Assembly (NCBI RefSeq): GCF_040938485.1
Contig: NW_027271492.1
Span: forward strand, 558,001-622,000
Reading direction: 5' to 3'
DNA from: Diadema antillarum
Taxonomy: Eukaryota
Length of the DNA stretch: 64,000 nucleotides
Positions 4,554 to 58,140 of this stretch are shown here, piece by piece (position 1 is the first letter of the stretch; each line of letters opens with the position of its first letter). Position numbers and translations under genes: made by a program. The notes under the pieces were generated by a model. The model saw only the letters and a program-made list of their open reading frames with translations, ran no database searches and was not told where the DNA came from.

Positions 4554-7500
4554 TTAAATTCTCCATGTCTGCAGATAATACCATGCAGACTGTTCACTCA
4601 CACCACCAATTTGAAACTGTTGTAAGGGGTGTATACAATATTATAACATATTGTAAAATATAAGAATATTTTTTCCCCAATATATTGAATATTGTCTCAC
4701 CTCGTCGCTGCAATACGATGGAACAGTAAACCATCTCTCTGGATCTGGTATCCCAAGGGTCATGTTCATCATTCCGCCAGAGTTCATCACGAAAACTATG
4801 TGCCAAAGGTCATTTCGGCGAAAAAAAAAGCAGAAGAAAAATATTTTAAAATGTGTTTCTTTCATGACCAATTACTTTCTTTTTATTAAGGTTGTTTTGT
4901 GTGTAAGTGCACGTTTGTCTTTCTTCTCAATATTAACAAGGGTTACGTATTCCCTTCAGAGTATGTCTCAAATAATGTGGGCTCAATATTGCTCTGCAGA
5001 TAGATATTTGCTCTGTTTGAATCGGTACTGAAATCGAGATTGAAGAAATATTAAAGACTTACTTTCTGGCCCCGGACCCATGCTGAATTTGCCTGTGAAT
5101 ATCTTGCCCAGAGGAAAGCAGGTTTCTTGGACAACACTGAGATGAAGCGTCCCCCTGCAGCCGCGCCCGGAGTGATGGGAGTTCCAACCGTACTTCCAGT
5201 TATCCACTGGCACTCCGTTCGGACCGCCGATAACGGCACTTCCGGTGTACGTTCCGTTCTCTGCAAAATGATAATAAAAATAATAATAATAATGATAATA
5301 ATAATAACAATAATAACAATAATACTAACAATGATAACATTAACTCCCAGGACTCATAGTTGCTAAGTTGGCCTCAAAGTTGCTGTCAAATTACTCCGTA
5401 TTATATCCTTGGTCACTCGACATCACTGACTCCACATATTCAGCAACTTCTCTGGAACAGTTGTCAGCCTACTTGGACAAAAATGAATATGTGATATTTC
5501 TGGAACGTGGAGTAAAAGTGGATTGGAAATGTGACTCTCAAGTAAGTTTTGATACACCATTACTCGGTTAGTCCCACGTGTTCAACTCTGAGATGTAACT
5601 TGTGCACACTCTAGTCTATGGGGCTCAGCCAGAATTTGACCTTTTGAAACTGTACCATTAGAAGCAGACCTTTTCTCTTGATCACCTGTGAATACCAGAC
5701 TTAGAGGCACACCCTATTTCCTTCTATTTTTGTGTACCTGGTTGCTACTCTTCTCATTCACTATGCCTACTGAAGCTTCAACAAGTACCACCACAAGACA
5801 ATCAGCTGCTATCGCTACTCAAGTGATGGCTGATCTGGTGAAGAATGAAGAGTTCATTCACTTGCTGGAGAGCATTGTTGGCAATGCGATTGAGAAGAAA
5901 CTCAATGAGCTCCTCGAACAAGTGCAAGGGGAAGTGTTCGATCTGAAAAGAGACCTGGAAGAGAAGGATAGAGAGGTTAAAAGGCTTGGCGAAAAGGTTC
6001 TTCACCAGGAACAAAACATCAGCAGATTGGAGCACACAGTAGACAGCCTGGAACAATACTCACGACGATCATGTCTCCGGATCTTTGGCCTGGAAGAAAA
6101 GAAAGGAGAGAATACCGACACGCTGGTCACCGAGGTCATCCAGTCCAAGCTGGGCGTGTCCCTGGATCCAGTGAAAGACATCGACCGATCCCATCGCACT
6201 GGAGGCACTCGCGAGTCTGCCTCACAGTCTAGTCGCTCATCCTCACAGAAAGCCCGTCCTCGACCGATCATCGTGAAGTTAAACAGCTACAGAAAGAGAA
6301 AAGAAATCACCACCAATCGTAGAAAGCTCAAGGGATCAGGGATTGTCATCGCAGAAGACCTGACAAAAAGAAATCAAAGACTGCTGTCACTGGCTCGTGC
6401 TTCAAAGAACATCACAGCTGCCTGGTCCTCTGATGGACGGATAATTGCCCTCATCAGTGCCTCAGGTGGCAAGACAGCCACAAAACTGATCACCTGCGAA
6501 GAAGACATCAAGAAATTACATTGACAATAATAGTTGAATGAAGCTGCTTCATAGTAACACTTAATCACTCTTACAATGATATACTTTTGATTACTTAAAT
6601 ACGATGTATACTTACCTGTTTACTACTGTCTATATAAAGTATGCATGTCAAATACAATCCTCTACTCCGATTTATGTTATTCTTCTTATCATTTCACTGC
6701 AATCAAGATTATAGAATTTGTATGTCATAAATTGTGTTCATTATTACATGTCATGTACTTCACGATGTACCAGTATTTTACTATTCATTACCTTGTCTCC
6801 AATATCTTCTGTTCTATTCCTGCTTCTCGAAACTCCAACAGCTATGTCAAATTGCTTGTGTTCAATAATGTGAATATTTTGTCTTTCTGTTGTATATTCT
6901 TATATGAAAAATATGTATATGTATGATACGATCCATGACGAACAAAACTTACCTGAATCTTATTTTGATGTGCCCGCCTTTAACTCAAAATATAAAGATA
7001 CCAAGTTGTCTGATTTATTTTCGTTAGTTCACTTTAATTGTAGAAGTTTGTCGAAAAATTTCGATAATTTGAATATGTATATAAGCACTATTGATCATCA
7101 TTTTAAGGTAATAGGACTTACTGAAACTTGGTTAAATGAATCTTCTTCAGTTGAAGCTTATAATTTAGATGAATATAATTTACTTTGTAATAATAGAATT
7201 AACAAACGAGGTGGTGGAACAGGTGTATATGTTCATAATTCCTTACATGTATTTATTAGACAAGAGTTGACAGTTATATCTGAGTCATTTGAAAGTATTT
7301 TTGTTGAGTTAGTAAATAACAACACTAAATGTAAAAAAACAATTGTTGGTGTGGTATATCGTCCCCCAAATTGTAATATTGATACTTTTTTGAATGAATT
7401 TGCAAAATTTTTACATAAGGTAAATCCGCGTGTATATAATTGTTTCATAATGGGTGATTTGAATTTAGATTTAGTGAAAATAGGTTTAAATTCCAAAATT

Positions 7501-10500
7501 GATTTATTTATGGATATTTTGTATGGATTTTATTTGGAACCTTTGATTAGCAGTCCCACTCGGATAACTGCAACCTCTGCCACTTTGTTGGACAATATAT
7601 TTACAAATGTCAATATTTGTACTCACTCAGGAATTTTGATTAGTGATGTAAGTGATCACCTGCCAATTTTTTGTATGTCTTCATCCATTGTCCATTGTAC
7701 AAACAAATCACCTCCCATTTATGTAAAACGTAATATTACTCAGTCAAATATGATTGCTTTTTTTAACACATTGAAAAATGTTGAATGGGAAAATTACATT
7801 GGTGTAGGAAGTGTTGATTTCAAGTATAATAGTGTTTTGCAAGTATTCAAACATATTTATGATGAATGTTTTCCTTATAAATCATATGATTTTAAGAAGA
7901 AGAATAAGAATCCATGGTTGACTAAGGATTTGATTAAGCTTTGTCGTAAAAAATTAAGTATGTATAAAAAATATGTTAAGAAACCAACCTTTTATAGAAA
8001 AGAGGTGTATAATAAATTTCGTAATTATGTTACACTTCGATTAAGACAAGCAAAAAAGAAATATTTCAATGAAAAATTTTATCAAGTGAAAAATGATATT
8101 AAATCAACATGGAAAGTTATCAATAATCTTTTAAAAGGTACAAGAAATACCAAAAGTAGTTTAATAGAAAGTCTTGAGATTGGGAATGAAAAAATAACTA
8201 ATAATAAAAATATAGCTGATTGTTTTAATGATTTTTTTGTTAGTATTGGGGAGAAACTGCAGATCTGTAATGATAACAGAAATGAAAATTCATATGATAA
8301 ATATTTGAAATCTCCTTACAAAAATAGTATATTTTGTAAGCCAATATCAAAAAAAAGAAATAATAACGATTGTAGAGGAAATGAAAAGTAATGTAAGTTC
8401 AGGTGTAGATGGTATAGATATAAAAGTTATAAAGTTTGTAATTTCTGTTATATGTGAACCATTAAGTTTTCTTTTCAATGACTGTATGTCTGTTGGTTTT
8501 TTTCCATCAAAAATGAAAATTGCACGTGTAACACCTATTCATAAAAAGGGTAACCGTAATGATATTAATAACTACAGACCAATATCGGTGTTAACTATAT
8601 TTTCAAAGATATTAGAGAAATGTATATTTGATAGATTAATTGAGTTTATAGATAAACAAAGTATTTTGATAAAAAGTCAGTTTGGATTTAGAAGGGGTCA
8701 TACAACAGCCACAGCAATATTAGATCTTGTGAAAAAAATAAATGATGCTATTGATAATAAAGAATATGCTGTAACAGTATTTCTTGACCTTACTAAGGCT
8801 TTTGATGTTATAGATCATTTCATTTTATTACAAAAATTATATTATTATGGTATACGTGGCCCCCCATTCAAACTTTTAAGTAGTTACCTTAAAGATCGTC
8901 AACAGTTGACTGTAGTTAATGAAATTGAATCTGATATCAGAACAATTAATTGTGGTGTTCCACAAGGATCGATTTTAGGTCCTCTTCTTTTTCTTATATA
9001 TATAAATGATCTACCTTTATCAACTCAACATTTAAGTTATGTTTTATTTGCTGATAATACCAGTGTATTTTGTAAAGGCTCAGATCCATGTAAACTGTTT
9101 GATATTGTTAATAGACAATTGTGTAATATTAGTGATTGGATGGAAGCCAATAAGTTGATTTTGAATATAGATAAAACTCATTATATTTTATTTGGTATGC
9201 GAATTATAACAGACCACAATTTGCAATTGTATTTTAAGAATATGAAAATAGATAAAGTTGTAAGCACAAAATTTTTAGGAGTAATTATAGATGAAAGATT
9301 ATCTTGGAATTATCATATTGATTACATAGCCAGTATTATATCAAGAAACATAGGGGTTTTGTATAAATTACAGTATCTTCCTAGAAATGTCCTTAAAATG
9401 TTGTATTATTCTTTGATTTCACCACATATTAATTACTGCAATATTGTGTGGGGATTCACTTTTAATAAGAATATTGATCGAATACATAAATTACAAAAAC
9501 GGGGAGTGCGTTTAATAACCAATTCAACATATGCTTCCCCCAGTTTACCTCTGTTTTTAGAAACTCAAATATTACCCATTCAAGATTTAATTTCATTAGA
9601 GTCTGCAATATTCATGATTAAACTTAATAATAGTTTTCTCCCTGATGTATTCTCTGATTATTTTACTCTCAATAGTTCAATTCATGATTATAATACCAGA
9701 AACGCTCAAAGTATTCATCCCCCATTAAATCGCACATCTTGTACGCAGTCATCAATATTTTACAAAGGTACTATTTTATGAAATAATTTAAATATAGTTT
9801 TCAGGATCAGTAAGACCGTAAGACAGTTTAAAAGATTGTATAAACAACATCTTTTTGATGCAATTAAGTTACAAGTTCAGGAATAGTTAAATATGGAGTT
9901 TTCTTCTTTTCTTCTCTACCTTCATATCTACACGTATCCGTTTTTTTATTGATTCAAGTTGTAAATCTTATCGTATTTTGCATTCATGTTTGTTTCAACT
10001 CAGTTACAAACCAATGATTATAAATGATTACATATATTTACATCACAATATTTCTTAAGGGATCATTTTCAATAAGCCTACTTTGTGCTTCTCATGATTC
10101 CGCCACTATCATATTTGACACTATGTATTTTTGTTTGTTTGTTTGTCTGTCTGTTTGTTTTTTTATGCAAAGTTTGTAAACCAATTATGAAAGTGGAAAT
10201 AAATGAAATGAAAAATTAATAATAATAGTAGTAGTAATAATAATAATGACAATAATTACAACAACGACAATAATAGATACCCCTCCCCACTCAACCGTGA
10301 TTCTTATTGAATAACAACAAAAACAAGTTTCGGAGGGGAGAGTACCTGCAAGCCAACACAGTCACATCAGAACTGTCCTGCAAGTTTATTACCAGGGAGG
10401 TGGAATTATCTTTCCACCTTCTGATATTGATACAGTATACGAAAGGTACATGTATTAGGACTCATACCTGTAAATAAAATGGACTGTCCCACACCCCTTC

Positions 10501-58000: not shown

Positions 58001-58140
58001 TTATTTCCACAGGCCCTTGATTATGCTGTTGTCAGCAGCTTATTACCGATTCCTCCCATGAATTGTTTCGGAGAACAGCATGGCCTCTGTGCGCTGACTG
58101 CAGCAGCAGCAACCAGGACGAGAAATACGTGGAGCTTCAT
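53294..58140 (-). CDS. Ependymin-related protein, paralog C (231 aa, 6 coding exons)
   Basis: Exons 58140-58047, 57467-57307, 55731-55647, 54925-54740, 54034-53940, 53368-53294, 696 nt open (intron 3 has a GC donor): MKLHVFLVLVAAAAVSAQRPCCSPKQFMGGIGTTSVYTSSEGTQPSASFLYGAFDFEERKFGFDMSIDYLNGTTTLFKIIQHYGEKTQWVILANYGLCLEQPAFEPEPTNCVHEGSRYGGNFVMGGPNGLKVKSYSYEYHPWEALQGVSTATVTEDSCFFVGSTFLGTRFDLPKGTSLFETSGSINITVGIEEPERWLRLPELCRKQSNMTSSALPKDMPDLSKIHIPRFF*. Confidence 0.9.
56448..56720. mobile_element. Palindromic GAGTG/CACTC-rich MITE, copy 1 (TA-flanked, animal CACTA/EnSpm-like)
   Basis: Near-complete foldback around GAGTGACCTCAGGGATCACTC; ends in AGAGAGTA. Confidence 0.8.
56980..57303. mobile_element. 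Palindromic MITE, copy 2, inserted at the exon 2 splice donor of gene C
   Basis: TACACACTCTCTCT...AGAGAGTA foldback. Its right TA coincides with intron positions +4/+5. Absent in B. Confidence 0.8.

Follow-up and report, generated by a model that had tools for sequence, protein, structure and literature searches.

Tandem duplication of ependymin-related (EPDR) genes in echinoderms has already been described (PMC6280359), and the vertebrate family member EPDR1 has a hydrophobic ligand pocket (PMC6363788). Here, we characterize a tandem EPDR array in the sea urchin Diadema antillarum. The window, meaning the whole stretch of DNA that was analysed, covers 64 kb (contig C604:558001-622000), and its four genes were named A-D by position. 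Our data make it highly probable that A-D are four intact tandem paralogues of the LVN1.2 group (EPDR clade 2, Cys profile 2) and likely secreted or vesicular carriers of hydrophobic molecules.

One exon plan in four minus-strand genes

Genes were detected by comparing all six-frame open pieces with one another and by reading exons and splice signals directly along the minus strand. Within the window, the comparison sorted the paralogous pieces, all on the minus strand, into four sets; it also revealed a segmental duplication that relates approximately 41-50 kb to 51-60 kb. All four genes lie on the minus strand, have six exons apiece and follow one common plan, with exons 1-6 measuring 94-97, 161-164, 85-88, 186-198, 92-95 and 72-75 nt and intron phases of 1,0,1,1,0. 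Exon 1 of each gene carries, in this order, the start codon, a putative signal peptide and a double Cys, and every reading frame is open from start codon to stop. A preliminary description of the window had proposed four open genes with the same exon plan, intron phases and six-Cys scaffold, and the minus-strand reading confirms this. The genes and their two unusual donors are as follows.

3363..17010 (-), gene A, 235 aa, six exons, stop included: 17010-16917, 16061-15901, 11623-11536, 5260-5063, 4795-4701, 3434-3363
26977..35498 (-), gene B, 236 aa counted from the second Met, six exons: 35498-35402, 34295-34132, 32702-32618, 31948-31751, 30285-30194, 27051-26977
42544..49063 (-), gene C, 232 aa, six exons: 49063-48970, 48154-47994, 46089-46005, 45258-45070, 43659-43565, 42618-42544
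53294..58140 (-), gene D, 231 aa, six exons: 58140-58047, 57467-57307, 55731-55647, 54925-54740, 54034-53940, 53368-53294
46003..46004 (-), GC donor of intron 3 of gene C, read directly, at the junction used by RefSeq protein P0003
55645..55646 (-), GC donor of intron 3 of gene D, read directly; the RefSeq D model skips the preceding exon

A sixth exon was expected, since in all four genes exon 5 runs to a good donor in phase 0. This exon was located in C and D from the annotated protein sequences. A short blast search with the C/D tail failed to locate the tails of A and B, and both were located later, when the tails of the annotated proteins were mapped to 3434-3363 and 27051-26977. Exon 6 of gene B has an alternative acceptor 3 nt upstream, at 27054. 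For gene A, the preliminary description had placed the last exon at 4616-4554 (63 nt). That candidate is not in RefSeq, is not conserved in D. setosum and is not homologous to the tails of B-D, and it was rejected. The real last exon, 3434-3363, lies outside the span first assigned to the cluster, so that the cluster extends over 3363-58140. When the window was searched by tblastn with the four models, no family fragments were found beyond these 24 exons.

Donors in A-D are GT, except for the GC at intron 3 of C and D, which stands in the consensus context for such introns. We considered an alternative for this intron, a GT donor two bases downstream paired with a later acceptor (phase 2), which would keep the frame. 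It was rejected because A and B use phase 1 and because the GC-donor junction is the one seen in the RefSeq and D. setosum proteins.

Family, fold and relationships of the four proteins

Searches were run with single exons or with stored proteins identical to our models. The word search took the natural 183-residue open frame around exon 4 of gene D and was scored on the exon only. Single exons give weak (14-15 bits) yet collinear matches to Pfam Ependymin (PF00811), whose gathering cut-off over the whole domain is 32.3 bits. A search with this profile had been proposed in the preliminary description as a check on family membership, and the proteins of genes A and C pass it at 40.1 and 42.1 bits over profile positions 3-128. 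A sequence search of the PDB returned frog EPDR1 (6jl9, E 7e-4).

Fold modelling covered the gene C protein. Its AlphaFold2 model, built on a 61-sequence alignment (pLDDT 88.7, pTM 0.82), is an all-beta curved sheet with a tail at lower confidence. In a Foldseek search, the best matches to this model were human, mouse and frog EPDR1 and sponge EPD-BCP1 (E ~1e-10, TM by target 0.66-0.76). The top 17 matches were all EPDR structures (EPDR1 or EPD-BCP1), and VioE and LolA came after them. A-D are ependymin-family genes with a LolA-like fold, and on family and fold the preliminary description is upheld by the Pfam, PDB and modelling results. The secretion it also proposed is likely.

Each protein opens with Met and one charged or polar residue, followed by a hydrophobic stretch of 12-14 residues, and positions -3 and -1 are occupied by small residues. 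In each gene, the double Cys stands four residues past the predicted cleavage site and is joined by four further conserved Cys. In C and D, these residues lie at 21, 22, 98, 111, 158/159 and 204/205, A and B have counterparts, and all six are invariant or at least 90% conserved among 61 relatives. Gene A carries an extra, seventh Cys. The six-Cys pattern of A-D corresponds to 'profile 2', published for clade 2 EPDRs (McDougall et al. 2018, PMC6280359). With Cys profile 2 and an identity to EPDR1 of 18-23%, the genes fall outside MERP/EPDR1 (clade 1). The stronger Pfam hits typical of MERP-type genes sit on contigs C641 and C1151, and comparing the window with these canonical EPDR loci gave repeat matches only.

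The sponge carotenoprotein EPD-BCP1 (PDB 8i34, PMC10470211) is the second-best structural match, which favors a hydrophobic pigment, a carotenoid or another, bound in the pocket, with coelomocytes or integument as the site. In addition, sea cucumber coelomocytes laden with carotenoid are enriched in an LVN1.2 isoform more than in any other protein (bioRxiv 10.1101/2025.06.02.657395). However, the EPD-BCP1 match reflects the common family fold at 14-16% identity, and we regard a role as pigment carriers as quite improbable.

We then placed the four proteins among their relatives. Genes C and D are 82.6% identical, B is ~43% identical to C/D, and A is 34-38% identical to the others. These values correct the preliminary description, which had A and D very distant from each other and from B/C. 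In a careful tree, all four genes fall inside an echinoid LVN1.2 clade of 24 sequences (support 98/94) that also holds the LVN1.2 proteins of S. purpuratus and Lytechinus. B groups with C, D and the D-type protein of D. setosum (99/94), and C and D are sisters (91/75). The C branch is approximately eight times the D branch (0.15 vs 0.019). A and B each pair with their own D. setosum orthologue, and one orthologue is common to C and D; these orthologues are 89-95% identical. Gene A sits in the basal polytomy of the clade, and a single clade of the seven Diadema sequences is neither supported nor rejected (p-AU 0.32).

The position of the window genes in one clade with the LVN1.2 proteins of S. 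purpuratus and Lytechinus bears on where they might act. The LvN1.2 mRNA was described as specific to the endoderm, with levels building up at gastrulation (Wessel et al. 1989, as cited in PMC9759900 and PMC12541058), and sea cucumber LVN1.2 is reported to be up in intestine after heat stress (as cited in bioRxiv 10.1101/2025.06.02.657395). A-D could therefore be gut or endoderm proteins (embryonic midgut, hindgut, adult intestine) that handle dietary or membrane lipids rather than signals. Against this, the polytomy resolves no one-to-one orthologue in Lytechinus or S. purpuratus, and expression sites often differ between paralogues. We hold the gut assignment as a possibility, and a tentative one.

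Selection was examined between the paralogues and between two haplotypes, the second of which is described below. dN/dS is 0.28 for C versus D (dS 0.30), whilst the haplotype comparison gives 0.23 for C and 0.07 for D. A-D are functional, constrained genes under purifying selection. A global C/D intron alignment was tried as a neutral rate and dropped for its many indels. A crude McDonald-Kreitman comparison of C and D, with two haplotypes per gene, gave ratios of non-synonymous to synonymous changes of 40:28 fixed versus 10:18 polymorphic (p = 0.046). This borderline result is the only hint of adaptive divergence between C and D, and no more than a hint.

Could the array represent an undescribed echinoid EPDR subfamily, a diversifying set of carriers for chemical communication, immunity or adhesion, as the preliminary description suggested? 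Crown-of-thorns EPDRs are secreted into sea water and are proposed conspecific signals (PMC9759900, PMC6280359). The paralogues are also strongly diverged, with 34-43% identity between A, B and C/D, and both the long gene C branch and the borderline surplus of fixed non-synonymous changes that separates C from D point the same way. However, the genes already have annotations and LVN1.2-derived names, they lie inside the echinoid LVN1.2 clade with its published Cys profile 2, and gene-wide dN/dS is 0.07-0.28. This reading as a whole is very unlikely in light of these results. A narrower proposal is that B-C-D is a Diadema-specific expansion in which C diverged adaptively and the copies carry different hydrophobic ligands (e.g. 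pigments, conspecific cues) in this keystone reef urchin; we consider this combination unlikely.

The long C branch can also be read in the opposite sense, as a sign that one or more copies, above all C, are decaying functionless duplicates. The higher haplotype dN/dS of C than of D would fit decay, as would the failure to find a C orthologue among the D. setosum proteins. However, the reading frame of C is unbroken on either haplotype. The gene retains its six Cys, every splice site and the tail exon, its dN/dS is well below 1, and its product yields a confident fold. Decay is thus highly improbable.

Exon 6 of C and D is identical at 74 of 75 nt, compared with 84-92% identity in the other exons. 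The stretch of high likeness (42383-42697 versus 53138-53501) runs from the end of intron 5 through the last exon to ~160 nt past the stop. Gene conversion could account for it, as could constraint on the tail and 3' end.

A secreted carrier of hydrophobic ligands is the best-supported reading of A-D because of data from relatives, namely LvN1.2, sea cucumber LVN1.2, starfish EPDRs and the EPDR1 pocket; secretion, ligand binding and place of expression are what we infer from these. Each pre-protein has ~231-236 residues, with a predicted signal peptide of 17-18 residues and one to four N-glycosylation sequons. The core is predicted as a curved antiparallel beta-sheet of LolA/EPDR1 type around a hydrophobic pocket, pinned by the conserved Cys, and a short conserved C-terminal tail is encoded on its own exon. 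The mature protein likely carries a hydrophobic small molecule, either after secretion or within vesicles, and its cargo may be a lipid or a pigment (e.g. a carotenoid). In our reading, B, C and D arose by tandem duplication in the Diadema lineage, with C/D as the youngest pair and C as the fastest-evolving copy, and A is an older paralogue.

Several points weigh against these conclusions. The protein of gene B (P0098) scores 32.1 bits (E 1.4e-7) in the Ependymin check, 0.2 under the Pfam cut-off. Gene D was scanned only as the RefSeq model that lacks exon 3 (21.5 bits) and as its D. setosum orthologue (38.5 bits). When the whole genome was scanned in six frames with Pfam Ependymin, hits fell on other contigs and the window was missed, since single exons score no higher than 14-15 bits. 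Signal peptides were recognised by visual inspection. No RNA run is listed for gene D (53000-58400), and no transcript contig encodes these exact proteins. Finally, ligand and tissue are drawn from relatives that are only 20-40% identical.

Annotation, probable second haplotype and intervening sequence

The D. antillarum assembly was annotated by the NCBI pipeline using RNA-seq (bioRxiv 10.64898/2026.05.24.727502), and the four genes are present in RefSeq. The gene A translation equals XP_071494121.1 (P0008) over all 235 residues, that of gene B equals XP_071494120.1 (P0099, isoform X2) minus its first 8 residues, and that of gene C matches P0003 exactly. The gene D translation equals P0001 (202 aa) plus 29 residues of exon 3, and our D model is 94% identical to a full-length D. 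setosum protein (P0002). A HMMER search with the gene C product returned 94 representative clusters, among them one that matches A exactly and one that matches B at 97%, and cluster look-ups of the accessions showed that the genes carry LVN1.2-derived names. The four genes are therefore already public, named and in a known clade. They are neither a new subfamily nor, as the preliminary description had it, hidden.

The practical value of our models is annotation repair on this contig. The RefSeq D model skips exon 3 (55647-55731), which holds two conserved Cys and is followed by the GC donor. On this contig, RefSeq gene B is a 191-residue 'uncharacterized protein' (P0100) that ends by read-through after exon 4, and exons 5 (30194-30285) and 6 (26977-27051) are intact in the window. 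Little biology is added, since tandem lineage-specific EPDR/LVN1.2 arrays in echinoderms are described and the genes are already in RefSeq.

The RefSeq B proteins begin 8 residues before the signal-peptide Met, and two of these residues are not encoded beside exon 1. Upstream of exon 1 (35499-35520), a stop and an AG precede the frame. The two residues therefore imply an unlocated upstream 5' exon.

The assembly comprises 1.75 Gb in 2963 contigs. A collinear second copy of the whole four-gene array lies at C308:1334500-1386000, corresponding to 2848-58140 of the window. It is 97.7-98.6% identical around gene A, introns included, and 95-100% identical over all exons of C and D and exons 1-3 of B, the B exons present there. 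The assembled C and D frames are intact on this copy. It looks like the other haplotype rather than a paralogous duplication. The assembly paper reports that 84% of BUSCO genes are duplicated and reads this as a past genome duplication (bioRxiv 10.64898/2026.05.24.727502). With the C308 copy taken as a haplotype, the locus shows that the 1.75-Gb assembly holds both haplotypes, which bears on that claim.

A profile scan of the genome found more LVN1.2-like arrays on C8 and C247, with three genes each and apparently one haplotype pair, as well as one LVN1.2-like gene on C988 and on C395, and MERP-type genes on C641 and C1151. A haploid genome thus has at least eight LVN1.2-like genes, with the four of the window included and MERP-type genes counted apart. 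The further LVN1.2-like loci are as follows.

C8:4271000-4322000, LVN1.2-like
C247:2558000-2616000, LVN1.2-like
C2515, LVN1.2-like
C988:135000-144000, LVN1.2-like
C395:845000-848000, LVN1.2-like

Three N gaps lie in and beside gene C.

49120-49259, N gap outside coding sequence, 56 nt upstream of the start codon of gene C
48584-48752, N gap in gene C intron 1, with exons 1 and 2 on read sequence either side
46105-46254, N gap in gene C intron 2, ending 15 nt before the exon 3 acceptor

These gaps leave every exon whole, and the exons on either side are in compatible phases. At 46105-46254, the acceptor AG and exon 3 are read and the branch-point region is unread. Exon-to-exon distances across the intronic gaps are 909 and 2065 nt, which is near the 1025 and 1996 nt on the second haplotype, where they were taken from exon match coordinates only.

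Mobile elements and repeats lie in and beside gene A. Its intron 3 holds a 4.86-kb insertion (5344-10206, +) that is not in the collinear C308 copy. It has three open frames, at 5688-6524, 6904-8391 (endonuclease domain) and 8381-9781 (reverse transcriptase), and is probably a recent insertion of a LINE-type retroelement; no exact target-site duplication was found. Between A and B, 18340-20730 (-) holds a 796-residue open frame with a reverse transcriptase domain. This frame is 38-41% identical to the element in the gene A intron and represents a second, different retroelement copy. Dense direct and inverted repeats at 11840-15200, in gene A intron 2, resemble a foldback element and are present in both haplotypes.

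Comparison with known EPDR systems

Sponge EPD-BCP1 (PDB 8i34, PMC10470211) shares its fold with the gene C model (Foldseek E 3e-10, TM by target 0.72-0.76). It differs from the window proteins in sequence, at 14-16% identity, and carotenoid binding is shown only for the sponge protein. Vertebrate EPDR1/MERP (PDB 6jld, 6jla, 6jl9, 6e8n) resembles the gene C model in its LolA-like fold, hydrophobic pocket and Pfam family. Unlike A-D, EPDR1 belongs to clade 1 and has a different Cys pattern, and it is 18-23% identical to the window proteins.

Like A-D, the EPDRs of the crown-of-thorns starfish show lineage-specific tandem duplication and belong to clade 2 with Cys profile 2 (PMC6280359, PMC9759900). 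The starfish has at least 15 EPDRs, compared with four here and at least eight LVN1.2-like genes per haploid Diadema genome. Secretion into sea water is known for the starfish proteins (PMC9759900).

A further comparison is with the development-specific protein LVN1.2 of L. variegatus and its S. purpuratus and Lytechinus relatives (P0009-P0014). These proteins share with A-D the tree clade (98/94), the RefSeq name, length, a putative signal peptide, double Cys plus four Cys and the Pfam Ependymin domain. Identity between A-D and LVN1.2 of Lytechinus or S. purpuratus is only 33-40%, with no resolved one-to-one orthology. Unlike the Lytechinus and S. purpuratus LVN1.2 proteins, B, C and D form a group of the Diadema lineage.

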